A DNA stretch of 64,000 bases, taken from Lytechinus pictus. Lineage: Eukaryota. Numbering within the stretch: the first letter of the stretch is position 1; every line of letters begins with the position of its first letter. The notes under the pieces are model-generated. The model was not told the DNA's origin and did no database searches. It saw only the letters and a program-made list of their open reading frames with translations. Below, piece after piece: positions 10,544 through 50,059 of the stretch. The stretch is taken from positions 22,816,001 through 22,880,000 of the forward strand of contig NC_087247.1 of assembly GCF_037042905.1 (NCBI RefSeq), read 5' to 3'. The translations under genes and the position numbers were made by a program.

Positions 10544-11062
10544 TTAATATTCTTCATCATCGTCCAACACTTGTCCAAGTATATACACAACTCTCTCTTT
10601 CTTCCTCTTCATCTCCTCATCCAGTTCGGTAACTTCCAATTCGTCATCGCTATCGGGATCATCGAACATCATGACGATTTTGGGGTAAATCTTTCGGATG
10701 AGCTCTTCGACCCCGTAATAGGCCACGGACCAGATGAACCCCTCGATAGGCATGGATATGCTGAAGATGGACACCAGGGTAAGAACTTCATGGAGAGCGT
10801 TTTCGTCTTGCCCAAAATAGTTCCAGGCCATGGCTGAGGCAATGAACCAATTCGGTGTGCCGACAGCGAGCGAGACAGCGCTGCAGGCCTCGTATGGTAA
10901 CTTGAAGACGGAAGCGAGGATGAGACCAAAGATGAATCCAACAAAGGGTAGAAGACAGCCACCCACCCAAAGCTGCCAGGCACCGATATAGTGATTTGGA
11001 TGGTTTATGCCGTTCAGGATAGGACCTACCACAACAGTCACCACAAATGCAAAGCTGCAAAT
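10544..11062 (-). CDS. SLC10A-like: SLC10-family (sodium/bile acid cotransporter-like) paralog A, last coding exon (C-terminal TM helices and acidic tail)
   Basis: Acceptor ttttcag|ATT, phase 0, 519 nt to TAA; LWVGGCLLPFVGFIFGLILASVFKLPYEACSAVSLAVGTPNWFIA aligns with ASBT [44 protein letters not shown]. Confidence 0.9.
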   Translation of the reverse strand: MCSFAFVVTVVVGPILNGINHPNHYIGAWQLWVGGCLLPFVGFIFGLILASVFKLPYEACSAVSLAVGTPNWFIASAMAWNYFGQDENALHEVLTLVSIFSISMPIEGFIWSVAYYGVEELIRKIYPKIVMMFDDPDSDDELEVTELDEEMKRKKERVVYILGQVLDDDEEY

Positions 11063-11468
11063 CTGAAAAGAATATAAAATCAGTACTATTATTTACAATG
11101 ATTAAAAAAATAAATCACATTGACATAAAAGTTAAAGTAATTTATGCTCTGTATGCATGTTTATCCATGCTTGGAACAAAGTGACTTCCGGTTAACGAAG
11201 AGTTAAAAGTAATACGCCACAAATATATTATTACAGTAGACAATGTTATCAGCACTGTCAGAAGGCGACATATTTTTGGAAATGACAATTATTTTTCTCT
11301 TTTTTTTCAAATGTGACGAACAATCAACATGACCAAGATCAAAATAAAGAAATGAAAACTAAAAGACGAATATCAGAAAGAGAGAAGAATTAAAATGGAC
11401 TAAAAAGTATTCGAGAAAATGTTTCCAATTATTCTATTGGGAGGGGGGGGAGCATAGCGGCTACTGTA

Positions 11469-11907
11469 CGGAATAATTTTGAGTGCCAAACAAATGACGA
11501 GATAGGAAAATGAGAAGACGGTTAAAAATGACGAGATGACGAGTTTTTGGAAGACGACAGGTAGGCTTGTTTGGAACAAGCCAAGATGGTGAATTGTTTG
11601 AATTCAGAAAGTTAGTCTTTTTGGTTCGGGACAAGAAGACAATGGAATGACGAGTTTAACGAGTTGATGATTTTGAAAGAAGACTTGTTCGGTACAAGAA
11701 GAAAGGATGACAAGTTGTTGAAATTTAGTAAGTAAACTTGTTCGGGACAAGACGACGAGTTGTTGAACTTTTCCAGTCGACTTTTATATAGAGCCAAATA
11801 AAAGATGACAAGTTGTTAAAAATTTGAAAGTCGACCTGCCGAGTCCCAACAATTCGTCATCTCGTCTTCTAGTCTTCCTATCTCGTCATCTGGCTGGCAC
11901 TTTTACG
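11469..11907. mobile_element. TA-flanked MITE with internal GACGAG/ACAAG sub-repeats in the last intron of paralog A
   Basis: Left AGTGCCAAACAAATGACGAGATAGGAAAATGAGAAGACG mirrors right CGTCTTCTAGTCTTCCTATCTCGTCATCTGGCTGGCACT. Confidence 0.6.
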
Positions 11908-11943
11908 TATTAGTGAATAGCAACAAATGAAAATAAATATTAC

Positions 11944-12154
11944 CTTGGCTACTTTCCTTGCCCGCTTCTCCCCTGCCAATCTCTTGAAGAGCACACCTAA
12001 CCCAGTTGGTATGAAGATGATGACTTCGGTGATGAGGATTTCACGAGGTGTACCTATGACGTAATATGCATTTGACCACGCACTCGAGTAGAAGGAAAAC
12101 CAGAATGGAATGAGCCCTATCGATAGGGCTGTAGAAAACATTGAAAGGCACAAT
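11944..12154 (-). CDS. SLC10A-like: SLC10-like paralog A, 211-nt middle exon
   Basis: ttctgcag|A TTG TGC... to ...GCC AAG|gtaata; phases 2 and 0 match the neighbouring exons; LCLSMFSTALSIGLIPFW...FIPTGLGVLFKR. Confidence 0.9.
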
Positions 12155-12177
12155 CTGCAGAAATGGAAGACAAATAA

Positions 12178-12777
12178 AGGAAAATGTAAAGTCCACCCCA
12201 GAAAAATGTTGATTTGAATCAATAGAGAAAAAACAAAGTAGCATAACACTGAAAATATCATCAAACTCGGATATAAAATAAGAAAGTTATGGCATTTTAA
12301 AGTTTCACTTATTTGTCACAAAACAGTGATAATTTATGCACAACTCAGTGGCATGCAAATAAGACGGTCAATGATGTCTGTCACTCACTATTTCTTTTGT
12401 TTTTTATTGTTTAAATTATACAATATTTCATTTTTTACAGATTTGACAATAGGGACCAACTTGACTGAATCATATAGTTTTAAGCAATGCTAGTTCCACA
12501 TGTTCATGGAGGAATCAATCGTTGTTTCACTTGATAATGAGGAGAAAATTAGAATATTTCATATTTCATGCAATAGAATACAAAAGAAATAGTGAGTGGA
12601 TGACGTCATCAGTCTCCCCATTTGCATGCGTATAACTGTTGTGTGAAATTAAGCAAAATTTTAAAATGTCATAACTTTCTTATTCTACATCCCATTTTGA
12701 TGAAGTTTTCAGTGTTTTGCTTGTAGGATTTTTCTCTCTTTATTCATATCAACTTTTTGTTGGGGTGGACTTGTCCT
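12178..12777. mobile_element. Kolobok-like MITE family 2 (TTAA target)
   Basis: TIR AAGTCCACCCCA...TGGGGTGGACTTGTCCT|TTAA; second copy in opposite orientation at 47769-48376. Confidence 0.8.
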
Positions 12778-12969
12778 TTAAGAACTGTAACGGGGGTAGA
12801 ATAATGTTTGATAATGACACATAGAACAGATGATGGATTTCGATCGGTAGAACTTTTGTTATCACATTTACTAAATGTAACATATTCAAATATGGAATAT
12901 CTCCACTTTCACACTCGCTCGCTTTAATCGCTCACAAATATTGTTGAATCGTATATAGTGGAGGTTTCG

Positions 12970-12971
<2 letters not shown>

Positions 12972-15080: not shown

Positions 15081-16290
15081 ATTAATTTCAGCTAAAAAAT
15101 TTTAATAATAGATAATAAAAATAGGAGACGACAGAGAGAAAACATAGAGAATACAAGAAAGTGTGTTAGGAGGGCGAGGAATTGGGGACAAAGTTTTTCT
15201 TCAAGCATCCCAACGTAGTTATTTTTCTATTCATGAACAGTACCCTTATAATTCCCTCTTAACCTTGTTCAATTTCCTTTTAAGTGTCTTTTCCCCCATC
15301 CAATGTATTTAATCATGCCCAATATCAATTATAGAAAGCCCCTGTTTCTTCTGATTAGTGCAAGGGCGTATCTTTCTCTCTATTAAGCCCTCTATTTATC
15401 CCATCTCGTTTCCAATAAATACCCAGTTCTGATAAGTTCGTCTTTGAACGTAAGATGAAATTCATATTTCAAATGCAACATATGGTTCAATGTTTCCATA
15501 TCAAAATAGAACTTCCTTATTTAACAATTATAATTTCGTCATTATATTCGAATGAATGTGGAGATGGAGATGATTCGCCATTGTCGATTTGAAGAGCCTA
15601 CATGTACATGTATATCACTCATGGAATTCAACATTCCTCTCATTCTTTTTCTATTCGAATGCATTAATTTCAGCTAAAAAAAATAATAATAGATGATAAC
15701 AATAGGAGACGACAGAGAGAATACAAAAAAAGTGTCTTGGGAGGGCGAGGAATTGGGGACAAAGTTTTTTTTCAAGCATCCCAACATAGTTATTTTTATA
15801 TTCATGAACAGTACCCTTATAATTCCCTCTTAACCTTATTCAATTTCCTAATTAGAGAAAGAAAAATAATATTTTGATATCGATATTTTTAAGTGTCTTT
15901 TTCCCCATCCAATGTATTTAATCATGCCCAATATCAATTATAGAAAGCCCCTGTTTCTTCTGATTTAGTGTAAGGGCGTATTTTCCCTTTACTGTCCCTC
16001 TACTAAACCCTATATATTATCCCATCTCGTTTCCAATAAATACACGCTCCTAGTTCTCATTAGTTCGTCTTTGAACGTAAGATGAAATTCGTATTTTAAA
16101 TGCAATATAATTATGATGCTTCAATGTTTCCATATTATCGAAATAAAACTTCCTTATTTAAAAATAATAATTTCGTCATTACATTCGAATGAATGTGGAG
16201 ATGGAGATGATTCGCCAATGTCGATTTGAAGAGCCTACACGTATATCACTCATGGAATTCAACATTCCTCTCATTCTTTTTCTATTCGAA
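15081..16290. repeat. Diverged intronic tandem duplication of ~580-630 bp (15081-15659 and 15663-16290)
   Basis: Both copies start ATTAATTTCAGCTAAAAAA and end CTCATTCTTTTTCTATTCGAA with collinear interiors. Confidence 0.9.
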
Positions 16291-18568
16291 ATCATTTTTT
16301 CTGCGATTAAATCAATTTTCTTTATAATTCATGTAGAATCTGCGCTCAAATTTCCCTTAAAACCACAATCTGTAGGTATCATGCATATTTTGCAGGGTCG
16401 TATAAACTGGTGGTTTGTGGCGTATACGAACGCCCCCCCCCCCTCCGTCTCTCCCCTCCCCCTCTCTATCCCTCCCTCTCCCTCCCCCCCCCCCTCTCTC
16501 TCTCTCTCTCTCTTGGAAAAGTTCAAAACACCAAATAGGTTAATGTTGACTGTTTTGGCGGTTGATAAAGTGAATTATATCTCCATGGTCGACGAGAACC
16601 CTTTTCTTTTTACAAAGTGAACCCTTTCCCCAGAAATTTTTTTGTGGGAGCAAGTTAGAATATTTTTATTTTAAATTGCTTAAACTACATTCTTGATAAT
16701 ATCCATAGGGTTAGGATTTTTTCATCATTGGTTTGGATTCCCTTATTTGGGTAGCCGACATTTTCCCAATTACATTTGTAATTGTTTTTGTTCATTTATA
16801 TCTTTTTCTTTATTCACTTTGGGGGATGGATGAATAATACAATTGCAGGGCGAAGTAAAATCAACAAAGATCCTCTTGATTCTATACGAGCAATCTAATG
16901 AATACAAATCTAACCCTTCAACTGCATCTGTGCATGGAAAACAAATCAATTATTGATATCGCGGTCCTAGCTTTTATAGGTATATTTCTATGAATGCCCT
17001 TGGATATAATATATTCTTCTCGGTATACTGCATGTTATCGGAGCCTGACTATAGTGAACTTGGGGGAGGGAGCAGCCCAGCCCCCGAAATTTTAAAGAGT
17101 TTTACGCTCCATGGATGATTTTTTTTTTATTTACATATAACATTTCCTTCAATATCAACTCGGACGCTTTCCTATGTAGTTTACTTAATCATATATGATA
17201 ACATTTCATATATTCTGCACCCCCTCCTGAAAAAAAATCATGATTACGGGGTAAGGCCATGCTCATGAATGTTGTTTAAAATCAATTTTTCATAACTTTT
17301 AGTTCTTTATTCGTAATTGGTGAATAGTTATGATGGGGGATGGGTTAATGGACGTCAACCTTCGATATATATACATGTATATATAGTTCTCTTTTATTGG
17401 AATTATTTCGTTCGTTTCCGTTTCTGTCTGTCTGCCTCACCCCCACCCCCTCTCATTCTCTCTCTCTCATATACTTTTTTCTATCAATCCCTTGGTGGAA
17501 CCGCCCTCCAGACAGTTATTGATAATTTGACAGTGTCCGATACAATTTTTACTATTACACTGTCAGTGAGGAGAGGGAAATGGAAATGGAGGGATAGAAT
17601 GCGAAAGATGGGGGGGAAAGGGATATAAAAGAGGGGCACTGAAAATGAATGATGTGTGATAGGGGGCTACATCAGGTCACAGAAATGAAATAGGAAAGCG
17701 ATAAAAAATCAAAGTATAAAGAACAGAGGGTCTGTCAAATCATGGTCAAACAAAAAAGATAAGACAAGATAAAAAGAAACAAAGAGAAAAAAACGCAGAC
17801 ATAATTCTCAATCAATCATACGACCATATTCATACACTATCTAGGTTCGTATGATAGTCTCCGCCCCTAATATAGCGTAAGTCTCTGAGGTAAACCAAGT
17901 TCATGATAAACAATTCAACATCCACTGAAATTTCAACACAATCATAAATCTTATTTTTGTATTGTTTGTATAAATTCCACCCTATCCATCTCCAAACAAT
18001 TTCCTGTATTGTAATTTGACTCCTGCACGATCGTGGACATTAATTATAACCACACGTTATGGAATTTTTCTCGAAATGAAATAAGTGTTATTGCTTGCTC
18101 TCCCAACCGAATCGTCTATACTAATTATAAGAAGTCATAATACCCCGTGGGAAATAATTCTACGCTTGCAATATGTCATGACATACCCTGAATAGATTAC
18201 TTCATTGTCGAATTTCCGATACTGGTCAAAATACTGGTTCTACAGGTAACCTCAACCGTCAACCACGATGCTGACATGTACCTTCATTTCTACCTTTCTC
18301 CATTTCTCTTCCGCAATGATGCGCCTACTTCTCTTAATGTCATCCTACGGTCCTTCTCATTTTATTTAAACCATCTCCTTGCACCTACTTTCACAACCTT
18401 AATCATTTTCATTGTCAAGATTTTATTTTTAAATTCAATTCTAATCATTATAATGGGGGATCCGCATGCAATACAACCCATACTGTTCAATGCATTTGGA
18501 CTTCAATTCAATTTCGTTTTCAGGGACGGAACAATGACCCACATTACCGGAACTACAACATGGGTCAT

Positions 18569-18876: not shown

Positions 18877-19190
18877 CCGACAGTGACAAACCCTCCTCCG
18901 TAGTAAACGAGGACGGAGCAGAATGGTGATACAGGACACACGGCCAGCATGATAATAGACAGGGCATCGAAGGTCTCCATGTCGAGGATGAGAGCCAGGA
19001 GATAACCGACCAAGGGCTGGATGAAGTACTGGAGACCTAGACCAATCATCACGCTCTGAGGAAGATGCATTTCTTTACGAGAGAAGTCATCCATCGAGAT
19101 GAAACAACCCATACCAAACATGACGATGGCTAACCCGACGTAGCTTAGTGTTATTCTTACGATAAACAAAACATTCACATGGGTTTCCAT
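18877..19190 (-). CDS. SLC10A-like: SLC10-like paralog A, first identifiable coding exon
   Basis: ttcttag|ATG GAA ACC... to ...GTC GG|gtatgt (phase 2); MFGMGC, GLQYFIQPLVGYLL and AVCP match SLC10 N-terminal helices; the three exons splice to 347 aa. Confidence 0.9.
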
Positions 19191-20840
19191 CTAAGAAAAT
19201 AAACAGAAATCATCTATTAAAATAGATTTAAAAATGATCCATACTTATAATCATTCGAGCACGATTCTTTGAATGATGTTAAATGAGAATGTGGCCACCT
19301 AATAGCTTCATGATATTTGTTTTCTTTTCATTTGAACAGCTCCAGCATTTGCTGTTTTCCACAATGATCCCAATGATCAAGATTCTTGTCAATGATTATG
19401 GTAACCTTTGCAAAGCACTAAAGTTAGAACCCGGGGGTTAGAATATATTTCTTTTAAAACGATATTGGGATCCATCATGCATGAGATACATCGACACTCA
19501 TTGGCTCAGTGGCTTGACGATCACGGCAAGAAAGTCAAGTTAGTGCACCAGTGTCTTTGGTAAGACTCTAGCGAGTTTTAGCACCACCACGCACAACGCT
19601 TTCAAGAACATAGAAAATATTATTGTCATAATATGCCCTCTATGACAAAGGGCAACCAAGAAGTCTTTGTTGAAAAATAGGAGAATCAAAACAGCAGTTT
19701 CGTCCTGGACGAATGACATATTTACAATATTTTGTCAGCTCTAATACTTAGGACGAACTGTTAATTGTTCCAGATCTCCCACCTGGTCATTGTCATTTGA
19801 CGGGTATTTTCAATACATTCATGGTGTTCTTGAATCATCATGCGTCATGATGCGAAAACTCCCTAATCACTGAACATATGCGGTTCCTATAGACGAAGAC
19901 GATTATCAGTCCTTATCAGTTAACCCTCTTGCTATGTCTCCTTGGCTTGCGCATGCACAAGGGTTAAAAGCCAGAGGTTAAAGCATTCTTAGCAGTTGAC
20001 TTCAGACCTTAAAATAGCCTGTTCTCTGTGCCCCTCACACAATGAAATGTATTTTAAATTGTGTTGGTTGAAGACCATCATAATATATAATTATGGATGA
20101 TTGTTGTGTCATGTGTATATGTCAGGCACAAGAGGTTGCATTAGACTTGTTGGAGTTCAAATTCTTATGGATATGGACTTTTGCCTCTTATGCAGCCAGT
20201 AATGACATTTTTCTTGTTAAATAATCCTCCCATATATAGGTCCAGAGCCAGCTTATGGAATGCAATTATCGAGAAAGTATTTAATTGTGTGATGGTGAAA
20301 ATTTGCCTAAATATCATGGAGAAAAATACTCAGAAAATTACACCCAAACAGGAAGCACTATTTCTGCATTATACTCACTGATTGGGCGAGAAACTCGTTT
20401 TCTCTCGCTGTGAGGTTGTCGAAACTGAGTAACTCTCTAGAGACTCCCATTCTCAACGTGATTTCTGCGAAATGAAAAAAAACGATAGATATTATAATCA
20501 TCATCATTTATTTATACTATATCATTACTGATTCCCACATCAGCAGCATCAGTGTTGTTATACATATCTCATAATGTATAATGCAAAATTACAGTGCACC
20601 AACAAAATGATGTTCTTCTCTTGGTCTATTCAAAGCCTATTATGTTAAAGTCTCACCTTTTGCAAAGATAAACCCAACTTTTCTTGACTAATGACGCACT
20701 GATAGCAGATCCCATTTTTTTTCTCAGATTGTACAATGATGGTTGAAATATATGATTGTTTTCTTTTATCTATCTTTCTCATTATACCATGCTACCATTT
20801 CATAGCGTTAAGAAACTTAATTTATAATTTGCGCGCTATA

Positions 20841-23264: not shown

Positions 23265-26200
23265 TTTTTCAATAAAGGGGCCGATATTGTCTTTTTGCAA
23301 GAAACCTTTAGTACTAGGGAATGTGAGGGTAGATGGGATTCGTCGTGGGACCGCACCAGCTATTTTAGTCATGGTTCAGCTCATAGCAAGGGTGTATTAG
23401 TTTTGATTGCGCCAACGGTAGATATGGAGATATTACAAGTCTTAAGAGACAATGAGGATAGATTTGTATTTATACATTGTAAGTTTCAAGGGGTTAGGTT
23501 GATTTTAGGAAATGTATATTTTCCTACATGAAATTTTGAAAAAGAACAAATGCAATTTCTCAAAAAAATACGAAATACCCTTGCTAAGTTGAATAAAGAT
23601 AATACCCTGTTATAATAGGTGGTGATTTTAACATGATTAGGGACAATAATTTAGATTATAACGGACAATCTCAAAATAGGATTTCAAATAGATTAAATCG
23701 AGACTTTGGAAAATTTATGGAAGACTTTCAATTTTTTGACGTTTGGAGATGTAGACATCCCCTGAAAAGACAATTTACATACATGCAAAAGAACCCCTTC
23801 ATTCAAAGCAGACTTGATTACTGGATAATTTCTGAATGTTTAGAGGAAATGGTTATAAGGTGCGATATAATTCCATCTGTGGCCCCTGATCATCATTCAA
23901 TTTTTTTACACTTATTCGACAAAACAAAAAATAAAGTTATTGCAAGGAAGAGGTCATATTGGAAATTTAATAATAGTTTATGTGAAAATGAAGATTATGT
24001 TAAAGAATTAAAGAAAGAAATTCGTGAATTGAGAAATGAATTGCAATCTGAAATAAAAGATAAGAGGTTGTTATGGGATTTTCTAAAAATGAAAATTCGA
24101 AGTTTTACACAAAAATTTTCGAAAAAATTGGCTGATAAAAGAAGGAAAATGAAAACGGATTTAGAAAGAGAAATACAGTTTTTAGAAGAACAATTGAAAG
24201 ATCGTACTGATGCAAATACTTTAGAAAAACTAGAAAATACAAAAGAGAAATTAAGGGAAATTTATAGTTATGTTAATGAAGGTGTTAAGGTTCGATCTCG
24301 TGCCTCCTGGTATGAATGTGGTGAAAGAGACTCGCGTTATTTCAACCAGTTGATGCAAAGTAATAAAAGAAAAACCACAATTAAAAAAATTGAAACCACA
24401 GATGGAAACATCTGTTGTGATGAGAAAAGAATAAGTGAAGAAATTGGGAAAGTTTACAGTAGGTTGTATGATAAAGTAGAGTGCGTGTGTTCGGATAACC
24501 TCTTTGATGAATTTTTTCAAGGATTACCTAAATTGGCGGAGACATCTCGAGAACTTTGTGAAGGGTTAATAAATAACAAAGAATGTCTAGAAATTTTAAA
24601 AGAATTGAAACACAATAAATCACCTGGAAATGACGGTCTTTCTTCAGAGTTCTACTATACTTTTTGGCCGGATATTGGAGATTTAGTTAAAGATGCCTTA
24701 AATGAGGCATATTGGTCCGGGGAATTAGCATCGTCGCAAAAACAAGCAGTTATTACGTTAATCGCTAAAGATGGGAAAGATCCTCTTTTATTGAAAAATT
24801 ATAGACCTATATCCCTTCTTAACGTGGATTATAAGATTTAAAAAAAATACTTAATGAAATCGTTGTGGGGGATCAGGTGGGTTACATACAAGGTAGAAGT
24901 ATTGGTGAGGCCATTCGTACTATAGATGATGTTATTTTTCATACATCCCATTTTAATCTACCTGGTTTTTTGTTAGCTATAGATTTTGAGAAGGCCTTTG
25001 ACTCGTTATCACATCATTTTCTTCAAAAGGCTCTGACGGCTTTTGGTTTTGGTATATCCTTTCAGAGATGGGTCAAAGTTTTGTATACTGACACTCTAAG
25101 TTGTGTTTTAAATGAAGGAAATTCCACCGGTTATTTTGAAATAAAAAGGGGGGTGAGGCAAGGGGATCCTCTTGGTCCTTACCCTTTTTATTTTGTGTAT
25201 TGAAGTAATGGCTAATAAATTACGAAAAGATAATCTGATTGAAGGAATTAGATTTGGAGATAAAGAAATTAAATTAGCAATTTATGCAGATGATATGACA
25301 GTTTTTGCTCGTAATGTAAAATTAGTTGATAGACTAAAAGTTTTATTTGCAGATTTTGAAAAACTTTCTGGATTAAAAATCAAGAATGAAAAAACGAAAG
25401 TATTAAAATTAGGCTCATGCCAGCATTTAGATTATGACTTCTCCTTCGGCGAGATCGTTGATTTTCTTAAAGTTTTAGGAGTATTTTTCACCCTTGATGA
25501 ACATAAGAAAGAAGATCTAAATTACAAAGAAATCTTAAGCAAAATTAAAACACTCTTGAACTTTTGGAAGCTAAGGGATATAACGCTTATGGGGAAGATT
25601 CAACTATTAAAGGTGCATATCTATTCTCTTACTCCTGTTCCTAAGTGGGTTTATGAATCATTGGATGAATTAACTTTTGATTTCTTATGGAAAGGTAAGA
25701 AAGACAAAATTAATAGGAATACAATGTTTTTAGACTATAAGCAAGGAGGATTAAAGATGTTAAACTTCCCTGTGCAGGTAAAGGCACAGCGAATAATGTG
25801 GATTAAAAGACATTTAAATAAAGATGAAGATATGAAATGGAAACAGTACTTTAATTTTGCCACTAAACATATGGGTGGAGATTTGATATTTTCATGTGAC
25901 TAGATACCAGGTTTATTGAAAGTAACAGCTTCCAAATTTTACATGGACTTATTAGAAGAGTGGGTAAATATAAGACATATTAGAAGTACAGAGTTTGGGA
26001 AAGTGGTGATTTTTAATAATAAGCTTATTCGATATAAAGGGAGTTGTATATTTGATAAGATTCTATACGATAAAGAGGTTTATAAATTGCATCATATTTT
26101 GGATAATAATGGTAAACTAAAATGTGATACACATTTTCTTAATTTGAATTTAGATGCAAATGATGTTGAAAAGATCAAGCATATATATGCCTGTTTACCC

Positions 26201-26920
26201 GTTAGTTGGAAGAACAATATTGAAATGAATGCAAAGCATAACTCTGGAATCGATTTCAATTTGGGTAAGAAAACATCTAATTTAATGCTTTTAAAATCAA
26301 AAGAAATATACGAACAGCTGTTGAATAAAAATGACATTAAACCTTCTATTTTCGACAAAATTAGAACGAATTATGATCTTACCAATAAGGAAGTAGAAAG
26401 TATAGTTTTAAGACTAAGATATTGCACACTGAATAGTCGATTAAGGGAGTTTCAGTATAAACTCTTGCATAATATTATATACACTAACCACCACCTTTTC
26501 CGTTTTGGTCTTGTTTCGACCAATTTATGATCATTTTGTGAAAAGGAAGAAGAAACGTATGAACATCTATTTTATACTTGTGAATTTTCAAAATCACTTT
26601 GGGATCTGTGTGCAAGAAGTATAATTTTTGAAATAAATAAATTTAGTTGGCAGGAAATTCTTTTCGGGAAGCAGGAGAAAAGTAAAGGTAAATATCAATT
26701 AATTAATCATGTTTTTATTTTAGTTACATATCTTACTTACAAAAACCGAGAATTAAAAAAACCTCCTTCATTGAATGAAATAAAAAATAGTATTAGGGGG
26801 GATCAAAGAGAAGAAAAGAATTTAGCAACAAAGAGGGGGACTCTTACAATCCATTTCTCTAAATGGGAAAACTTAATTAGACCATTTATTGGAGCCCAGA
26901 GCCAGCTCTCCACCGGATAG
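23265..26920 (+). pseudogene. Fragmented LINE ORF2 (endonuclease/reverse transcriptase)
   Basis: ORF pieces 23295-23531, 23633-24841, 24865-25203, 25172-25903 and 25916-26530 are separated by stops or frameshifts, in correct domain order. Confidence 0.88.
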
Positions 26921-28800: not shown

Positions 28801-28869
28801 CATTGACTATCAGGATAAAGATCTATCTATTTATCTATTATAGGTACATCTTTATCCTGATAGTCAATG
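28801..28869. other. Near-perfect 69-nt hairpin (30-bp arms, 9-nt loop)
   Basis: CATTGACTATCAGGATAAAGAT (22 bp) is exactly inverted at 28848-28869; arms extend to 30 bp with two mismatches. Confidence 0.85.
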
Positions 28870-28881
28870 TGTAATTACAAA

Positions 28882-31115: not shown

Positions 31116-31260
31116 GGGCGTGTGGTCCACTGGATAGAGCATTGGACTAAATGATTGTTAGGTTGAGAGTTCGAATCCCCGCTCGACCACTATCTCCACT
31201 TTAACCCAAAATGACCCGAGAGTAATTTATTCCGTCTGTGAGGTCAGCCACTATAGCCAC
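31116..31260 (+). mobile_element. tRNA-derived SINE, diverged copy
   Basis: A box TGGTCCACTGG and B box GTTCGAATCCC; body TCTCCACTTT...CCCGAGA...AGGTCAGCCA homologous to the copy at 62269. Confidence 0.75.
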
Positions 31261-31910
31261 CTTTCGCAAACATCAGGGACGGTAACATTAGGGTCCCCTA
31301 ACACAAAAGTTAACGATTAATCATACACTTTATAGTCAATAGAATCAAACGTAGAAAACTGCTCTACAATCATTGCTAAGCTTAATTTGTTGCAAGCCCT
31401 ATATATCTGCTTTTCGTGTGCAAAATTCTTTCACGCGACACTCGTTTTCATGCATGTGTACGTCTGGTCATCATCGTATATGCCCCCTGAGCCGGCGGCG
31501 AGCCTCTACTATGACAGCTGGCTGGAGATATTCGAAATGCATGGCTTACAATAGATTATGACATGGATAAGAAAGTGGTTTTTCAAACAAATCGAGTACA
31601 TATTGAGTGAGGAAAAAGTTACTAAATTAAGGCTTAGATATAGATCATAACAGTCCATCGAATCGATATTGCATTTAATTTGGATTGTTGGATCACTGGC
31701 AATTGATTCCATGGGTCAGATCACCTCTCCAGCCGAAACCATTTCGCATGCGTTGATAATATGTACACAGCATATGCAATAGGCCTAAACGTCTGAACAC
31801 CGGCCGAATTTGCAGGGTTTTTTCTTTGCTTACTCCTCCTATGCCTCTAGCACACAATGTATTGGGCATTATGTTTTACTTTTCCCAGAAATGGGGATTA
31901 GATTCAAATT

Positions 31911-32213
31911 CCCGGGGGACCACTTCCATTGATGAGTGGATACCAGGCGCGACTATGAGCTTTCGAAAAGCACCCTAAACAAGGGAAGCGAGTCTTTTCC
32001 AGATTATGAAAATGCATCTCTTAACAAGTATTTAGCTTGTGAAACCCTACAAGTATTGGAAATACATTATATCCCCCTTTTCAGTATTTCAAACATCGTT
32101 TTTGACACCCTTTTACGTTACATAGGCCTATACGTAACGTACTTGCCCACTCTTTCCCTTTTTACGCGTGGTCGCGCCTGGTATCCACTCTTCAATGGAA
32201 GTGGGCCCCCGGG
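31911..32213. mobile_element. MITE with CCCGGG termini and ~45-bp TIRs
   Basis: CCCGGGGGACCACTTCCATTGATGAGTGGATACCAGGCGCGAC inverted as GTCGCGCCTGGTATCCACTCTTCAATGGAAGTGGGCCCCCGGG. Confidence 0.8.
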
Positions 32214-35200
32214 TGGCCTCTCAAGCTCTGGGAGGAACCAAATGTGGCTTTGGAAAGTCGTCCTAAATCGCATATATCGCTGTTACCATAGTAGCAACCA
32301 GAATTTTGCGCACGAAACGCAGATTGAATGTTTCCGTTCCAGATGCGAAACGAACAAAAAATCTCATGTCACACAATTTGCATTGCAGGACAGAGTTTTA
32401 CGACCATGACGACGGGCCCAAAAGTCTCTTCCAAAATCAACTACCGTCGTAAATAAGCGTTCGCGTTCTCCAACGAAAGGTCGGGACTGTCGAAGATTAT
32501 CGACTTGTGCTAGTTGGGGGGGGGGGGGGGTCACACACATTAAAAACTAACCCATTCGTTCATAGCAAATCAGGATGTGATTTGTACTGTCCATATCTCT
32601 GATCCTATCTAGTTTGTTCATAAACTCTGTCTTTCTCTGCAATATGTCAATCCTGTCAGTCAACAGGCGGTTCACATCTACTCTAGATTGGCATTTGCCG
32701 TTCGCAGCACCAGCCAGTCCTGGTCAATAACAACTGAAGATATTGTGTGAGTGGGGGTGAGTTCGTGGGTGTATACTGGCAAATATCATCTAGAGTAGAT
32801 AAAAAGCTCGAGCTACCATCACCGGCGCTTATAGTGCATTCAAGGAATATTAATCACTGAATAACCACTTCACATTCCTGTATTGAATCAATCTACACTC
32901 TTTTCCAATCCGGGGTCAGAATAACATAAGAATCCGTCCGTTTTGGATTATCCTAGAATTACAAGGAATTGAGCCAGTTTTACCAGGAAACGGTCATATC
33001 TTACCAAGAAATTGCCTTCGGATATTACTTGAGTGTTCCATCAAGGGGAAATTTCCCCGGTATTCTTTTAGAGTGTATGATAATTCGCTAGGTGTACTAC
33101 GGGGAGAGGTGAGGGTCAAGAAGGTGGCATTCCTTTGATGCTTCCTTGTTAAGATAATGTGAATACCATTTGTGATGAATAACGTCACCTCCTGTTTAGA
33201 CAAGACGAAGATGTGTATATCAAATCATATTTATGTTATAAACAGTGTGGGTTTGACGTATGATTCCCAGAGAGGAGCCACATAATTATGTGCGTGAAGT
33301 TTATTATACGATCACTATAATAAATCAGAATCACACAGTTTCAACGTGACGAACATGAGTTACGATAAACATCTCAATACATGGATGTAAACATGCACTG
33401 TGTTGTTATTACTGACAGCATGTGTCTGAACTGCCAAAGTTGACATGTGTCTGCTATTATGAGGGCATTGCCCAGCTACTTGTAGGGGACATATCTTGTA
33501 TGACTCTTAAAGCATCTCATGACACAAGCTTTTTTATTTGGTAAACTCAAGAGTCGTGTTTAGGTAAACCTTAACCATCTTAACCATTCAGGAGAAAGCA
33601 CTGAACTCCAATATCTGAAAGGGCATTCTTCCAAGACGTGCATGGGGCGTCGGGGTATAAGAGCTGAAATCGCACCCTCCCCATCGTTTATTCCCCTTTT
33701 GGAAATTTTTAGCCCCTTTAAGGTGGATCCCTTGATCCGCCACACAATGCTATATGTTAAATCTTTTCTGTATCTGATACATAAGGGGACGGAGAAAACG
33801 ACTTCAGACAATTAATTAGTGAGTATGTATGTGTAGTATACCCATGAGGACGGTGATTGATTCATAAAACAGAAAAGGGTATTTTGAGAAAAAAAATGGA
33901 ATAGGCCTGTGCAATACAGAAAGATACACTCTTCAACAGTATTGGTCACCACATAATAGCCAGAGAATATTGTGCCTTACCCCCAAAATGCTAATAGGTA
34001 TTAAGGTTTGACTTGGTGTCATTTGGCATCAGTTTGAGAGTTAATGACCATCAAATCGAATTAACAATCTGTCTCAATATTTTTGGTTGAAAACAATTTG
34101 TATAACAACGTTTTATTCTTTAGAAAAAGAGTGCAGGTATAGAGATATATGTACAATGGACATATAATTAGATTAACAGAAATATGAAGAAAAAAATATA
34201 TAAGATGGATAGGTTAATGGATAAAGAAATAAATGGACAATTAGGCATAATATACAGATGGGAAGATAAGTAGATAGATGTAATACTTTAAAGGATAGAC
34301 AGAAAGATAGACAAACCAACAAAATAAAACATACATGAAAATGCTGGTAGATGTACTCGTATTGTAATAAACTATAACATCCTAAAAATGGATTGGTCCG
34401 AGTGTGTAACTGAATTACATGTGTCCAACAACAACAGCATTAACTAAATCATTTTTTTTTTGGGGGGGGTATTTTTACTTTAATTTTGTTCTGACACATA
34501 TTACAAACATACTGATCATATTGACTAATTCTTAAGAAACGTTATGATGTATGGAGTATGGACAAAATTAATGTAAATATTCCGATAGGGGCCATAATAC
34601 ATGTCGCCTATATACATGCCAATTATTATTAAAGGCAGAATAAAAGTAAATATACACTGACAGTATAACGTAATAGGTAAACAAAATTGAGGGAAGAGAA
34701 CATGGGGTGCGGGGAGAATATTCCTTAAAAGTCGCAAGCGAACGAAGGGACCGAATAATACAATGATCTTTACAAAATTAAAATCAAGTTTTGTGACCTA
34801 TTTCGAACATACTATCTATAAAATGATTTTCATATTATTTCTTTAATTTCCCTTTTCTTCGGTCGTGGAACTTCCTGAGGGAGGGGCCGCCAAGGTCCCC
34901 CGCCCACATCTGTACGCCCCAAAAGAATTCGGTTTTGGAAAAAACTGGGGGCTGAAGCCCACCCAGCCCCCCCCCCCCCTCCCGTTCCCGCGGCCCCTGT
35001 ATAATACAATCATGTCAGCACCCGTAATGTTAAACTTTGATCGGCCTATATAGTTGCTTTAATCAAATACTCAAAAAGTATCAACAGACATATTTTCCTT
35101 TCTCAGTTTTTATTACGCAGAATTGTTTATCTTACAGCGCGAAATATTTTGCATTAAAGAACTCCACAATTTGGCGCCTACAAAACTGATTGAATTAACA

Positions 35201-36427
35201 CATGTTTAAATTAGCTCACCTTTATGAGGAAGGGAATGATAATATATTCCAAGCCTCATATGTTGTCACTGCCCACTCACTAAAATCCCAAACTGAAAAA
35301 TGTTCACACTCCTACGAGGGGCCATTATTTTAATCTTCATGCCATGCTGCAACAACGATATCCAGTAGTGGAGATTGATAGTAGGGTAAAGTGAAAGGAA
35401 CAAACCCTTCCTTCCCAATATAATTGGCGTAGACAAGGGGGTACAAAGGTATACATGCCACATTAGAATGAGAAATTAAAGAGGAGGAACCGCGAGCAGA
35501 GAGTAAGTGACATTACACGACATCTTACTTGCAGATGGATCTTTTATCCATGTGGTGAATGGGTGGTTATTAATGTATGCTCATCCGAAAATGTATCTTA
35601 CACCTTATTTTCAGGATTGAAAATTACACTGAAAGTAAGGTGTAAGGTCATAGTTGATTATGTGGTTAGAAAGTACCATTTTTTCGGGGAAGGGGGATGG
35701 ATAACTTTACTGATGGAGAAGGGCGCCGTCTCTTAAATTAATGACATTTTTCAAATGAAAAAAAAATGATTAAAAAAGAGACACTGAATTATATACGATA
35801 AGCTGCCTTTAGTTAAATATCGAAGACCAACATTGGATGCCTTTGATAAGGAAGTATTGCGGATGGTATAAAGCGTAGGCATATATACGCAAAGCATTCA
35901 AAATGAAAAAAGGACCATATACTTGTGTCTGCTCATTGGAGATTATGCTGGTAGAACATGTAATGTCGCCAAAATAGAGTACATAATAAAATATTACAAG
36001 AGGATTTTGATGTCATAAGGTGAACACGTTACACACTAATAAATAGGGGTGCACATTTTAACCCTAGCCTATACAGGGATTGGCACGATAGCAGCACCCC
36101 AAGAGTGCTAATGAGTGCAATTATACACCCCTCATAGTGCAAAAGACCTTGGTGCAAATGATATTGAAAGAGTGCATTTTTGCACCTCTTTCCAATAATG
36201 GGTCTAAGATTACGCCCCAAAAGTTTGGTACAAAATAATGTTACATTTAGGATTTTAAAAAATCTTAGTGTGTACATACTAAAAAATAAGTGTTGAAATT
36301 TGAACCCTGTGAAAAGGTACATTAAAGGGTGCAATTTGCTACATATTGCACCCTAAACGGATAAATTAAACATTCAATGAGGTGCAAATTTGAACCATTT
36401 AATTATTATGATCCAAACTAGCATTTA

Positions 36428-39207: not shown

Positions 39208-41804
39208 TATAGAACGATTTTATAACTTTAAGTTTGGATGATGCCCTACAAAAATTATATTTCCTTTAATATCAAAGTTTTGTCTTAACTTCGTTTCAAA
39301 CACATCATTTACTTAACATCTTAAATACCGCATTCAATCAATAAAGACTGATAAAAATATAGAAGTAGACATATTTTATGTGCACTGATAATTGGGAGTA
39401 GCACTGTAACTGATTAAATATTAAATACCACCAGGCAGACACGTACTTGTCATATACCCGCATGTTCACAATAGCCTCATTTATAGGGAACATCAAAGTT
39501 ATGTTTTGATCGTTCTTAATGACAATCTTGAGTAGGCCTCAGTTGGTCATGTGATATCCATGTAATAGAATTTCGAAGGTTTAATGATATAAAGGAAAGA
39601 TAAACTTAAATTCGTCCTCATAGGCATATAATACCGATGCAGAATGATGGATATTGAAATACATACATGATATATGCATGCGTGTACGTATGGGTGTCTT
39701 GAGGATGTGAGGTTTGTGATTTTTCATTTAAAAAAATGGGAACCCAAAAAAAACTATAGTCTGAACTGCTTGAATAACTTGGACATTTTCTATCGATTTG
39801 ACTAAATTACTACTTTTTCTATATATGTTTAATGAATAATTCCATGAAGGCAAGCTTGACTAAAGATGATTACAGAAAAAAAATCCTTACACACACGAAA
39901 AAGTTATAACGAGGCCTATTAGGCCTTACATCAAAGAAAACCTACATATCAGTATTAAAGGGGGTAAAATATTCCAAATGTACATATTCCATTATCGATA
40001 CAATTTGAACTTAAAAGACCGAATTGACAATTCCCTTTTTTTTCTCTATATATTTTCTCTTTATTCACTGATGATTAATGTACTCAACTGCAAAAGATCA
40101 TCAAACAAAAAATAATCGAATAAAATGCAAATCAGGTATGTGGAGGTGTGCATGTGTGTTTTGCCGTGGCTGCCAATGTACAGACGTCCGAGGTACAGAA
40201 GTCCGACATTCGATTCCCGGTACTTTACATTGCCTTTTTTTTTTTTTTTTTTTTTTTACTCTAGATGAAAATAACATTGAAGCATCATTCACAAAACAAA
40301 AGGGTTGAGTTTTTCTGTAGATGTACATCTATTTTATATGATGAGCTCAAAGATTATGTTTCTAGTTTCTCGTGTCATTACCTACACATTAATGATTAGT
40401 CTTTGCACCCTCCTATATTCCCTCTCCTTGTACGACGAGCAAAATAATGACAACGCTGAATATTTTATACAAACGAATACCCCTTCGGGAAATTTGTAAA
40501 ATGTCTCCTTATGTCCATACAATGGCGATTGCATGTGGATTTTAATGGGAATCAAATTGGAAGAAAGGGTGAAGACAACAAGCCATTACCTTCCACCAAT
40601 CCGCCACAAAATAATGTTAGATACAGTTAAAACGATGAATGTTGTCGACAAGTCTATATGCTACTTGTTGCGCCAAATTTAAGCAAAGCGCTATTTATTT
40701 CATAAAACGGGAAAAAGTTGGTTCTATTGGCAAAAAACCACCAACCTTCTAGGAGTTAGTTATCTTGAATACAAAAGAACATAAGTTTTCATTAACGTTA
40801 TAAGAAAATTTGATATATTACCTCCTTCGTGCGATTCAAAGCAGTTACAGAGATTAGTTTCCAAGATCTTATATATGCAGGCTTCGATTTACAGTATATC
40901 CAGGGTAATAGTCACCTGAGGAGTATACAGTCCAACACCTATGTCTCAAGGTAGATTTCTCTTTCCGTAAGGTCCATCATCAAGAAAGGGTTGGTGAAAA
41001 AGAAGTATATTTCGCTGCTTTAGAAAAAAGAGATGAGTGGCGCCACCCGTGCCACAAAGTTCAATTAATAGTGAAGCAAAACACGGATAATAATTACATT
41101 TCACATCCTATATCGTCCATCTATCATCAAAACGCTAGCTAAATGTTGTCAGATGCCATTAGGGAATGGGGAAAAGTTCATCGCTGTTTAAGTTGATAAG
41201 TTAAACCGCGTTATAGGGGAGGAGGAAGCTTTAGTATATATGTAAAAGTTGAGAGCTGTAATGTGCGTTCGCGCAAGCCGTAATGCAACAAGCTTTACGT
41301 TATGAGAAAAACGTATGTGCCACTATGTCAACGCCAGCATTGCTCCTCCTCCACACCGTATAAATGCACATGATGAAATGAGACACTCGTCTACCAGGAT
41401 AATTATCCTGCTTTGGATACCAGTATTATTATTTGTTCTGTTGATCTTACGCATGACTATCCTTGGGCACTTTTTACTATACCATATACTCCATTTTCCA
41501 GCCAAGTCATCGTAAAAAAATAGTTCTATTTTTTTTTTTTATTCCTGAATGATTCGATGACTCTGTCGGCCAGAAGAAAGACTTTTCTATTTTTATACTT
41601 ATAAGACAGGTTTCAGTACTTGTAATAAGTATTATTGTTTGAGTACTTGTAAAAGGCCCTTATTCTAAGATTATAACCATCTATTGTGGATACCGAATGC
41701 GACAGTACTATTTCAAGTCAAGGGTCGCTGTGGTGTCAGTGAATGTGTTCAAAGCTCACTGCATGGGGTCGTTAATTTACGATATTACAAGTCCAAAAAA
41801 AATA

Positions 41805-46148: not shown

Positions 46149-46667
46149 TCAAGCAACGGATTCGTCATAATCAAAGTGAGAAACGTTGATGTCAACCTGT
46201 GTCATACCATCGATATCGTCTATTTCTATGACATCAAATCTATCCTTTTCATCGTCGTCGTCATCGTCCGCGTTGCAGCAGCACTTGGGGGATAACTTGG
46301 TGAAGAATTCCTGGATGTTTCTAAACATGATGGACCAGATGAACCCTTCAATGGGTAGGGTGATGCTGAAGATGGACAACAGCGTGATGACACCGTGCAG
46401 GGTTTCTTCTTCGCCTGAAAAGAAGTGAGTGGCGAGGCTCTTGGCGATGAACCAGTTAGGTGTGCCGACGGCCAAGGAGATGGCGCTGCACACCTGAAAT
46501 GGAAGGTTGAAGAGGAGGGAGAGGAAGAGTCCACAGAAGAACCCAGATAGAGGAAGGACGATGGCGGCCACCCAGATCTGCCATTCGGCGTCGAAATCTC
46601 CAGGATAGGCAATACCGCTCAGGATTGGACTGACAATGACAGCCACCCAAAAGGCATTGCTGCATAC
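46149..46667 (-). CDS. SLC10A-like: SLC10-like paralog B, last coding exon
   Basis: cttgatag|GTA TGC AGC, phase 0, 519 nt to TGA; collinear with the paralog A exon (SLAVGTPNWFIA and PIEGFIWS identical). Confidence 0.9.
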   Translation of the reverse strand, partial: VCSNAFWVAVIVSPILSGIAYPGDFDAEWQIWVAAIVLPLSGFFCGLFLSLLFNLPFQVCSAISLAVGTPNWFIAKSLATHFFSGEEETLHGVITLLSIFSITLPIEGFIWSIMFRNIQEFFTKLSPKCCCNADDDDDDEKDRFDVIEIDDIDGMTQVDINVSHFDYDESVA

Positions 46668-47431: not shown

Positions 47432-47768
47432 ATAGCGAAGTATTGGAGGAAAGGGGTGACGGAAACTTTATTAGGTATAGGGGAAATGGAGATAGACAAG
47501 ATAGCAAGATCATGATCGAGGGCGGTATAGAAAGAGGGAAAGCAAGGGACGAGAAAGGAAAAAAGGGGGACAGGTAGACAGTCACCAAACCATAAAGAGT
47601 AAGGACAGAATATTTGTGGGAAGGTCAAAGGAAAGGAAAAAATACCGATACCCCCGGAAACAGGACAAGAATCGGGAACTCTGAAAATTGAAATAAACTC
47701 GATGTTAGAGGGCGTTCTGAGGATACGGAAAACATTAGATTGATTCAAAGTACTCACAGTCATCTTAA

Positions 47769-48376
47769 AGGACAAGTCTACCCCAACAAAATATTGATTC
47801 AAATAAAAAGAGAAAAATCCACCAAGCATAACACTAAAAATTTCATCAAAATCGGATGTAAAATAAGAAAGTTATGACATTTTAAAGTTTCGCTTAATTT
47901 TACAAAACAGTTATATTCACATCCTTGTCAGTATGCACATGAGGAGACTGATGACATCACTCACTCACTATTTCTTTTGTATTTTATTATACAAATTATG
48001 AAATATTCCATTTTCTCTCTATTTTCGTGTGAAACAACAATTAATTCCTCCCTGAACATGTGTAATTAGCATTGTTTAATACTATATGGTTCAATCAAGT
48101 TGGACCTTATCGTCAAATCTGTATAAAAGAGGAAATATTGTATAATTCAAACAATAAAACACAAAAGAAATAGTGAGTGATGGACATCATCGACTGTCTC
48201 ATTTGCATGTCACCGAGTTGTGCATATCACTATTTTGTTGAAAATAAGTGAAACTTTAAAATGTCATAACTTTCTTATTTTACATCCGATTTTGATAAAA
48301 TTCTCAGCATAATGATTGTTTGATTTTTTTTTCTCTTTTTATTCAAATAAACATTTTTCTGGGGTGGACTTGACCT
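47769..48376. mobile_element. Kolobok-like MITE family 2, copy 2, with TTAA TSD
   Basis: TTAA|AGGACAAGTCTACCCCA ... TGGGGTGGACTTGACCT|TTAA. Confidence 0.88.
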
Positions 48377-48385
48377 TTAAATTAC

Positions 48386-48596
48386 CTTTGCCATTAGTCT
48401 AGCATTCTTCTTCCCATATAATCTCTTGTATAAGAGACCCAGAGCTGTGGGTATGAAGATTTCTACTTCAGCAAGGACGATGTCAGATGGGGTTCCAATG
48501 ACGTAATACTCTTGGGTCCAGGAACTAGAGTAGAGGGAGAACCAAAACGGAATCAACCCCACGGATAGGGCTGTAGAGAACATGGCCAAAGATAAC
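48386..48596 (-). CDS. SLC10A-like: SLC10-like paralog B, 211-nt middle exon
   Basis: caacccag|G TTA TCT... to ...GCA AAG|gtaatt; same length and phase as in paralog A; LSLAMFSTALSVGLIPFWFSLYSSSW. Confidence 0.9.
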
Positions 48597-48891
48597 CTGG
48601 GTTGAATATGAAAGGGGATAAGACAGTGTAAGAACAAAATCAATAACAAGAAAAGTGTCTAGACCTAATACATCACTTCTTTTGTGATTTTTTTTATTCC
48701 TCTAAATCTTTTTCTTTCTCAGTAAATTCCAGGAAAATATTGTCGTGTAGATACGTCATCATTGGAAAGCAATTTCTATCATTCGATTTCAATCTTGATT
48801 GACAAAATAAATCTTCATCAAGTAGGCCGCTTTTCTTCGGCAACATTAACATTTATGACGGAATCGAAGGCAATTCTTAATAACATTACTG

Positions 48892-49721
48892 AACAAGTGG
48901 AATGACTCTGGCGGTCTCACCTGATTCACGCGATTCAATATAACAGCAGTGCTGACTTTGAAAACTACAATAAAATAATTATTTAAAGAAAACACCATTC
49001 ATATAATGATACAATACTACGTTCATTGACATTTGACCTTGATCATGTGACCTAAAACTTGTCAGTGATACTTGATTACCCCTATATCCACAATTTATAC
49101 ACTATATCTATAAACTTTGAAAGTTATGACAGCAATCTAATAATTACATCTAAAACGGCCAAAGTCCATTGACCTTAAATTACCTTTGACCTTGGTCATG
49201 TGACCTGAAACTCGCACAGGATGTTTAAAGATACTTGATTACTCTTATGTCCAAGTTTAATGAATCAGATCCATAAACTTTCGAATTTATGATGGTAATT
49301 CAACAGATACCCCCATTATGGCCAAAGTTCATTGACCTTTGACCTTGGTCATGTGACCTGAAATGCGCACAGGATGTTCAGTGATACTTGATTACTTTTA
49401 TGTCCAAGGTTCATGAATCAGATCCATAAACTTTCAAAGTTATGATGGTAATTCAACAGATACCCCCAATTTTGCCAAAGTTCATTGACCCTATATGACC
49501 TTTGACCTTGGTCATGTGACGTGAAACTCAATAAGGATGTTCAATAATACTTGATCAACCTTATGTCCAAGTTTCATGAACTATAGGTCTATATATTTTC
49601 TAAGTTATGCTGTCATTTCAAAAACTTAACCTTCGGTTAAGATTTGGTTTTGACGCCGCCGCCGCCGTCGGAAAAGCGGCGCCTATAGTCTCACTCTGCT
49701 ATGCAGGTGAGACAACAAAAA
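48892..49721 (+). mobile_element. Helentron-associated (HINE/DINE-1-like) non-autonomous element with internal ~145-bp tandem repeats
   Basis: Starts AACAAG; sub-terminal IR GTCTCACCTG / CAGGTGAGAC; ~4 TGACCTTTGACC-containing units; (GCC)n; 3' stem-loop GTCTCAC..GTGAGAC followed by an A-tract. Confidence 0.7.
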
Positions 49722-49751
49722 TGGCCAAAGCAAGAAGTTTTATTTACGCAC

Positions 49752-50059
49752 CCGACCATGACAACTCCTTCGCCATAGTAGACGAACACGGCACAGAAGG
49801 GAGATACCGGGCAACACGAAAGAATGATCATGGCCATGGCATCGAAGACGTCCATCTGGAGCAGGAGAGCGAGCCCGTACCCGATCAGGGGTAGGAAGAG
49901 GGATTGGAAAGCGATGCCAATCACCACGCTTTTGGAGAGATGTTTGTCTTTATCAGAGAAATCCTTGATTGAGATGACACAACCCATGGAGAATAAAGCA
50001 ACAGCAATTCCAGTATAGCTGATATAAAAGCTAACAGTCGATAGGGTGTGCTCGAACGC
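49752..50059 (-). CDS. SLC10A-like: SLC10-like paralog B, exon homologous to the first coding exon of A; no start codon at the exon start, so upstream exon(s) are required
   Basis: aaaacag|GCG TTC GAG CAC... to ...GTC GG|gtgcgt (phases 0 and 2); LFSMGC, AFQSLFLPLIGY, SCCPVSPFC. Confidence 0.88.

Follow-up and report, generated by a model that had tools for sequence, protein, structure and literature searches.

The window analyzed here, a stretch of 64,000 nucleotides from Lytechinus pictus chromosome CM073228.1, carries two SLC10 genes, A and B, which are arranged head-to-tail on the minus strand. Both were described by four-exon models with GT-AG splicing and uninterrupted reading frames. 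Gene A encodes a protein of 371 amino acids and gene B one of 364 amino acids. The two products share 52% identity, in line with the value of about one half estimated in an earlier note on this DNA. Model A is identical to the RefSeq L. pictus entry XP_063952722.1 and model B to XP_063953933.1. RefSeq names both proteins "ileal sodium/bile acid cotransporter-like".

Coding exon 1 of gene A (20379..20450, minus strand like all exons listed here) comprises the ATG, residues 1-24 of the N-terminus with an NLT sequon and a GTGAGT donor, and matches RefSeq. Exon 2 (18877..19190) encodes TM1-TM3 including Q78 and the first crossover CPVSPFCS (residues 109-116) and gives a Pfam SBF match. TM4-TM5 are encoded by exon 3 (11944..12154), together with E172 and with G129 and S133, which occupy the positions of the former Na1 Ser and Thr. 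Exon 4 (10544..11062) covers TM6-TM9, an acidic tail and the stop codon; the codons of A265, P269 and N270 are located at 10865-10867, 10853-10855 and 10850-10852, respectively. In gene B, exon 1 (51081..51137) encodes residues 1-19, again with an NLT sequon and in agreement with RefSeq. It is followed by exon 2 (49752..50059) with the motif CPVSPFCA (residues 102-109), exon 3 (48386..48596) and exon 4 (46149..46667), which contains the codons of A258 (46470-46472) and P262 (46458-46460) and an acidic tail. The intact frames reported in the earlier note were found again, but its gene extents lacked one 5' coding exon per gene, that of gene B lying beyond its range. The start at 19190 which it had given for gene A corresponds to RefSeq isoform X2 and not to the full model.

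The motif replacements on which the earlier note was built are indeed present. Within the window CPVSPFC was matched exactly twice (18918-18938 and 49793-49813) and so was GTPNWFIA (10839-10861 and 46444-46466), in all cases on the minus strand and with a chance expectation of none. A tblastn search of the window revealed no paralogs or pseudo-exons beyond genes A and B, and no RNA families were found there with Rfam. The same tandem order, B then A, is kept in Strongylocentrotus purpuratus.

Both proteins belong to the Pfam family SBF (PF01758), with scores of 85.2 bits for A and 61.4 bits for B versus a gathering cut-off of 24.3; a canonical urchin paralog reached 131.2 bits. No match to SBF_like (PF13593), the SLC10A7 type, was obtained at E <= 0.01. 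The score for Mem_trans (PF03547) was 16.3 bits and remained below the cut-off of 25.7. This match was rejected as a sign of PIN/AEC membership and taken as superfamily noise. Extra domains are absent from the clade proteins. AlphaFold2 models of A and B (pLDDT 85-86, pTM 0.81-0.82) are predicted to share the nine-helix fold of NTCP, with a core and a panel domain and two discontinuous crossing helices. The predicted helix breaks are located at residues 109-113 and 267-270 in A and at 102-106 and 260-263 in B. A Foldseek search returned NTCP as the closest structural match of both models, with a TM-score of 0.85-0.87 and an rmsd of 2.5-2.9 Å. Homology to NTCP, ASBT and SOAT (SLC10A1, A2 and A6) as well as to the bacterial proteins ASBT_NM and ASBT_Yf extends across TM1-TM9. 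The common framework of NTCP and ASBT is kept, namely the GMG motif, Q78, P83, P110, G124, S136/T137, P145, P178, G245, G267 and N270.

The positions of the sodium ligands were mapped by HMMER alignments to the solved structures of ASBT_NM and NTCP and by an alignment of 41 sequences, using the Na1 and Na2 residues of NTCP as defined in the literature (PMC9242856). All these sources agree with the earlier claim that the replaced residues are Na+ ligands. The position of NTCP S105 is occupied by Cys (C115 in A), that of N106 by Ser in A (S116) and Ala in B, that of the Na1 residue S119 (S128 in ASBT_NM) by Gly (G129 in A) and that of T123 by Ser, Ala or Thr (S133 in A). E257, the Glu common to Na1 and Na2, is replaced by Ala (A265 in A, A258 in B) and the Na2 residue Q261 by Pro (P269 in A, P262 in B), just as first noticed. 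At the E257 position the 41-sequence alignment showed Glu in 28 of 28 canonical sequences and Ala in all 13 clade members, and both crossovers are devoid of acidic residues. The "GD" pair, previously described as lost, has lost only its Asp, which became Phe or Val, while the Gly (G124) is still there. Several polar residues of the NTCP cavity have turned hydrophobic, e.g., N103 to Pro and Q264 to Phe. Preserved are the crossover Asn N262 of NTCP (N270 in A) and the Na2 Gln Q68 (Q78 in A). The latter is the sole canonical ligand retained among those tested (S105, N106, T123, E257, Q68 and Q261; S128 of ASBT_NM), and the proteins do not possess the ligand set of Na+-coupled SLC10 members. To judge by the aligned residues, both canonical Na+ sites are dismantled in A and B.

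A separate observation concerns C115 at the former Na1 Ser position. The residue is an invariant Cys among the echinoids and either Ala or Ser in the holothurian members. That C115 forms part of a metal- or thiol-based site is a speculative idea.

DNA of the orthologs came from a Logan transcript as well as from the loci of S. purpuratus. When Lytechinus was compared with Strongylocentrotus, dN/dS was 0.10-0.15, at a dS of approximately 1, which is near saturation. In 14 of the 20 motif codons all variation is synonymous, and the proteins diverge at the same rate as the canonical urchin paralog. Conservation peaks at the crossovers, the hinge Gly and Pro residues and the half-helix cap positions. 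An intronless 2.26-kb contig encoding the A ortholog provided evidence for a spliced transcript. The clade is under purifying selection. This bears out the earlier preference for selection over decay; lack of expression combined with a dN/dS near 1, which had been named as the contrary outcome, was not what we found. The odd motifs are the only feature that would suit decaying duplicates or annotation artefacts. Canonical splice sites, intact frames, spliced transcripts and the tandem order kept in S. purpuratus all contradict such an origin, the probability of which is negligible; decay to pseudogenes is ruled out by the dN/dS and the synonymous-only variation in the motif codons.

In the phylogenetic tree A and B fall into a clade whose monophyly is supported at 100/100 and which also includes Diadema, with a single-copy gene, and two holothurian genera. 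The separate SLC10 subfamily postulated before was thus recovered, with a wider scope than had been stated. An exhaustive HMMER search of 1.84 billion proteins retrieved clade members only from echinoids and holothurians and none from asteroids, ophiuroids or crinoids. Every other match in this search besides P0001-P0004 carries the canonical Glu. Camarodont urchins possess at least three paralog types of the clade. The clade nests with metazoan SLC10A1-6-like sequences, its branch point being an unresolved metazoan polytomy. The shared Glu was lost before the echinoid-holothuroid split, from which we assume a clade age of probably more than 450 million years. Our literature search on sea-urchin or holothurian SLC10, Na+-independent BASS proteins and the Na+ sites of SLC10A7 yielded nothing on this clade.

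The RefSeq names are the only argument for regarding A and B as ordinary orthologs of the Na+/bile acid cotransporter ASBT. The tree speaks against it: vertebrate SLC10A1, A2, A4 and A6 group together (100/99) and leave A and B out, the stem of the clade measures 1.96 substitutions per site, and no vertebrate SLC10 member is orthologous to the clade. Moreover, the Na+ ligands are gone and urchins retain separate canonical SLC10 paralogs. ASBT orthology is therefore very improbable, and the RefSeq name denotes similarity, not orthology.

Since nearly all Na+-holding residues are replaced, the clade probably works without sodium. We favor, with a probability of roughly 0.55, the reading that the tandem paralogs A and B are functional and that their echinoid/holothurian SLC10/BASS clade consists of Na+-independent elevator carriers. 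Loss of the buried acidic residue would remove the cation requirement, and prolines would pre-organise the unwound segments which are normally ordered by Na+. The carriers would then act as Na+-independent uniporters or exchangers of the elevator type. Their substrate would be organic, probably an amphipathic anion, and might be bound by the conserved Asn and the dipoles of the half-helices, in a similar way as in the PIN-FORMED (PIN) auxin carriers. In ASBT_NM, Na+ stabilises substrate binding at the N-termini of TM4b and TM9b and at N265 (PMC10645422). The half-helix-capping Asn, a substrate contact in ASBT, is kept in the clade.

Alternatively, A and B could still be ion-coupled at a site that has moved or has changed its chemistry, for example by H+ via E172 in TM5 or by a cation at backbone carbonyls together with Q78, Q82, S112, S263, N270 and C115. 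The preservation of Q78 (NTCP Q68) and N270 (N262) is in favor of this, as are the clade's own polar residues Q82, S112 and S263 and E172, which is invariant among the echinoids. However, both crossovers are stripped of acidic residues, and the predicted place of E172 is in the panel domain and not in the core, approximately two helical turns in from the outer end of TM5. The holothurian members have Leu at this position; consequently, E172 cannot account for the clade as a whole. We consider ion coupling unlikely. The loss of the coupling residues and the more hydrophobic cavity would also suit proteins which transport nothing and serve as receptors, scaffolds or regulators. In Ca2+ homeostasis, such a part has been argued for SLC10A7 and yeast Rch1. 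SLC10A7, an atypical SLC10 relative, is not known to perform Na+-coupled transport. Yeast Rch1 is another such relative (PMC8073359). Both represent the separate SBF_like subfamily, whereas the present clade groups with SLC10A1-6-like sequences, without an SBF_like match or extra domains. Furthermore, the positions at which its conservation is highest are all needed by an elevator carrier, which makes a non-transporting function rather doubtful.

Besides the lost ligands and the more hydrophobic cavity, the echinoid proteins differ from NTCP and ASBT in an added Pro immediately before the second half-helix in both crossovers (PVSP-F and GTP-N-W). The Na+-independent elevator carrier proposed above resembles in this respect PIN8. 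Transport by PIN8 does not depend on Na+ or H+ gradients, and its proline-proline crossover follows the pattern P(N/Q)X-hydrophobic-hydrophobic (PMC9477730). PIN proteins (AEC, PF03547) share the crossover-elevator fold class and a Pro at each helix break. Their motif is fitted by the second crossover of the clade, P-N-W-F-I in types A and B and P-N-V-Y-I in type C. In contrast, the first crossover reads P-F-C without Asn or Gln, so that the full motif is found at one of two crossovers. The topology of the clade is inverted relative to PINs, and PIN8 matched the models with a TM-score of only 0.35-0.39 (E 0.09). By Mem_trans score and duplicated crossover motif A and B are not members of the PIN/AEC family, and the resemblance would be convergent. 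In the holothurian members the second crossover has no added Pro, and in one of them, P0004, the first has none either. The proline crossover is thus not a feature of every clade member. It is conceivable, although only as a tentative proposal, that an SLC10 lineage converged on a PIN-type proline-proline crossover and became an ion-independent uniporter or exporter, driven by the membrane potential, for an amphipathic anion specific to echinoderms, e.g., a sulfated sterol or saponin-related metabolite. If true, this would be a natural experiment on uncoupling an elevator symporter from Na+.

The link between Na+ binding at the helix crossover, substrate binding and the elevator movement is a matter of debate for NTCP, ASBT and BASS transporters. 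The clade is a long-lived natural variant which has given up the common Glu and most of the remaining ligands, with fold and crossover still strongly constrained. It could reveal which replacements suffice to make a BASS transporter independent of Na+ and whether the ion can be replaced by prolines. Additionally, a misleading automatic name is corrected. L. pictus is genetically tractable and knock-outs are therefore feasible. A laboratory counterpart exists for the exchange of Glu to Ala. E254 of ASBT_Yf is presumably equivalent to E260, the Glu common to both Na+ sites. The ASBT_Yf E254A mutant was folded and outward-open (PMC9242859; PDB 4N7X), and its structure was among the structural matches of both models. 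The mutant carries a single engineered change, whereas the replacement in the clade is natural and selected and goes together with roughly a dozen others that co-vary with it.

The replacement of the canonical Na+-site motifs in the two SLC10 genes A and B, as described in the earlier note, was confirmed. The window is AT-rich animal DNA (35% G+C, no N runs) in which the two peptide motifs of that note each occurred twice on the minus strand, with a chance expectation of none. Gene models were built from ORF maps and inspection of splice sites. Gene A (exons 20450-20379, 19190-18877, 12154-11944 and 11062-10544; 371 aa) and gene B (exons 51137-51081, 50059-49752, 48596-48386 and 46667-46149; 364 aa) are both encoded on the minus strand by four exons with GT-AG introns. 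Intron positions and phases are identical, and the proteins share 52% identity. Both models match RefSeq Lytechinus pictus entries letter-for-letter (XP_063952722.1 for A, XP_063953933.1 for B), where the genes are already predicted; in GCA_037042905.1 they lie at about 22.83 and 22.86 Mb of CM073228.1. No other called gene was found within 10 kb of A or B, and tblastn detected no further gene copy in the window. The shorter start proposed previously for gene A, at 19190, corresponds to isoform X2, and the full model has one more 5' coding exon. Here an in-frame ATG (Met25) opens coding exon 2 immediately past the acceptor; RefSeq isoform X2 starts at this Met25, without the 24-residue N-terminus and its NLT sequon. 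Gene B has no ATG at the matching position.

To predict the fold, AlphaFold2 was run on alignments of 92-95 sequences, for A through its L. variegatus ortholog (98% identity) and for B directly. The models reached pLDDT values of 85.4 and 86.2 and pTM values of 0.81 and 0.82, respectively. Nine long helices were predicted, two of which are broken exactly at the motifs: at residues 109-113 (C-P-V-S-P) and 267-270 (G-T-P-N) of A, and at 102-106 and 260-263 of B. The top Foldseek matches by TM-score were NTCP structures (0.85-0.87, rmsd 2.5-2.9 Å), followed by bacterial ASBTs; SbtA, NapA and PIN8 matched weakly. Together with a Pfam SBF score well over threshold for both proteins, this ranking identifies A and B as genuine SLC10/BASS-fold proteins. 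Among solved structures, the closest in sequence (E 1.8e-20), ahead of NTCP and ASBT_NM, was a recent entry of 300 residues that is titled [quoted passage not shown] and carries canonical Na+ motifs (PDB 28sx, 28sz, 28sv, 28sw).

In HMMER alignments the exons and the full-length A protein were collinear with solved structures from TM1 to TM9. C115/S116 of A aligned to ASBT_NM S114/N115 (NTCP S105/N106), G129 and S133 to S128/T132 (NTCP S119/T123), A265 to E260 (NTCP E257) and P269 to Q264 (NTCP Q261). In NTCP, Na1 is formed by S105, N106, T123 and E257, and Na2 by Q68 and Q261 (PMC9242856). Consequently, the assignment of the replaced residues as Na+ ligands is borne out. Q78 (NTCP Q68) and N270 (NTCP N262) are retained in A. 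The only clade member without this Na2 Gln is the S. purpuratus type C2 protein P0045, which has Leu. Of the "GD" after the first crossover, reported as lost, the Gly is in fact kept and only the Asp is replaced, by Phe (A) or Val (B).

These changes were followed in an alignment of 41 sequences, consisting of 13 clade members, 22 canonical metazoan SLC10s, three bacterial BASS proteins and three further canonical-motif sequences (outgroups or without stated taxon). The E257 column held Glu in 28/28 non-clade sequences and Ala in 13/13 clade members. At Q261, Gln was present in 27 of the 28 non-clade sequences, and Pro (echinoids) or Val/Ser (holothurians) in the clade. Further clade-wide changes around the sites are PGG to PVS, the Thr opening the second half-helix to Pro, and, beside the Glu position, the preceding R-T to S/C-A and the following Thr to Val. 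The holothurian members are intermediate: they carry the Glu-to-Ala change but retain G-D/N, and one copy still has the Na1 Ser. This suggests that the Glu common to both sites was lost first and the remaining ligands later, in echinoids.

When a profile built on the C-terminal half was run exhaustively with HMMER against 1.84 billion representative proteins, only 39 matches reached E <= 1e-3. The Glu-to-Ala change was present in the four best (P0001-P0004), whose named sources are all echinoid or holothurian, P0003 being placed with an Apostichopus sequence; the remaining matches carried a canonical E-T-G-x-Q-N type motif. Searching a 5.8-billion set with the profile and single sequences added named members: one copy in Diadema setosum, types A, B and C in L. 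variegatus, L. pictus and S. purpuratus, and the holothurians Holothuria leucospilota and Apostichopus japonicus. Canonical-site SLC10 genes also occur in urchins, crinoids and hemichordates. In a maximum likelihood tree (LG+C20) the 13 clade members were monophyletic (support 100/100), with a stem 1.96 substitutions per site long. Echinoids were sister to holothurians, and camarodont A + (B + C) was sister to Diadema. Since vertebrate SLC10A1, A2, A4 and A6 formed a separate clade (support 100/99), the RefSeq name "ileal sodium/bile acid cotransporter-like" is a label of similarity, not orthology. A literature search found no paper describing the clade or its Na+-site loss.

Between Lytechinus and Strongylocentrotus, dN/dS was 0.13-0.14 for A and 0.10-0.15 for B at a dS of about 1; for S. 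purpuratus A and a close relative it was 0.23-0.28 at a dS of about 0.1. Among the 20 motif codons of five coding sequences, 14 were amino-acid-invariant with at least two synonymous codons and one varied in amino acid (Ser/Ala). Thus, the replacements are selected and not decaying, as the earlier note had argued. Divergence between the genera was equal for A, B and the canonical urchin paralog (77-78% identity). A 2,257-nt Logan contig contains an A-type ORF without introns and with 5' and 3' UTRs, and is therefore a spliced mRNA; a 1,723-nt contig gave the same intronless picture for Holothuria. The B-then-A head-to-tail order recurs in S. purpuratus, and A and B share one contig in L. variegatus.

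How might such a protein work? In echinoid proteins a clade-specific proline is added 1-2 residues ahead of each second half-helix, and the half-helix capping Asn is invariant. The clade's natural Glu-to-Ala change is the same as the laboratory mutation E254A of ASBT_Yf, whose E254 we take to be equivalent to ASBT_NM E260. This mutant was folded and outward-open (PMC9242859). In ASBT_NM, main-chain NH groups at the TM4b and TM9b N-termini and N265 hold the substrate carboxylate, an arrangement stabilised by bound Na+ (PMC10645422). The echinoid proteins have lost the buried acidic residue, and charge balance would therefore not require a cation. The second crossover fits the duplicated PIN motif P(N/Q)X-hydrophobic-hydrophobic, both as P-N-W-F-I (types A and B) and as P-N-V-Y-I (type C); the pivot of PIN8 is a "proline-proline crossover", and its auxin transport is independent of Na+ or H+ gradients (PMC9477730). 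From the proline crossovers, the likeness to PIN8, the lost Glu and the ASBT_Yf mutant, we favour a Na+-independent elevator carrier, which would act as uniporter or exchanger. Because several polar NTCP cavity residues are hydrophobic here (including N103 to Pro and Q264 to Phe), a typical bile salt is unlikely to be its substrate.

Alternatively, ion coupling may have been kept through a relocated or proton-type site. This is unlikely, although the clade-specific polar residues Q82, S112 and S263 and the Glu E172 in TM5, invariant in echinoids, speak for it. E172 (exon 11944-12154 of A, and its equivalent in B) lies about two turns into TM5 in 11/11 echinoid members, is replaced by Leu in holothurians and in 23/28 canonical sequences, and could possibly be protonated. 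A role without any transport we consider still less probable. To the extent that sequence, structure prediction and evolution can speak to it, the interpretation in the earlier note is supported.

Three collinear non-coding blocks (40963-41491, 35283-35432 and 7877-7986) are conserved in the corresponding B-A intergenic and A-downstream regions of S. purpuratus, with 69%, 71.5% and 77% identity despite near-saturation of synonymous sites. These blocks are candidates for cis-regulatory elements or an unannotated RNA. Some 6 kb downstream of S. purpuratus gene A, and on the other strand, locus L003 carries a gene with an ATP-synt_C (proteolipid) domain (28809-32769); a search of the first 10 kb of the window detected no counterpart. 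An interspersed repeat of ~600 bp lies at 12182-12788, 28 bp upstream of A coding exon 3, and at 47756-48380, 6 bp downstream of B coding exon 3. It is palindromic and MITE-like, since it matches in both orientations, and the location of the copies in different introns implies independent insertions. Remains of non-LTR retrotransposons with reverse-transcriptase domains (Pfam RVT_1, zf-RVT) are found at 5867-7752 (minus strand) and 23633-26530 (plus strand), the latter split by frameshifts into at least four ORFs. Duplications, either tandem or local, as well as satellite-like arrays occupy 61045-62268, 54712-56100, 28871-29213, 15081-16296 and, within intron 2 of gene B, 49021-49621.
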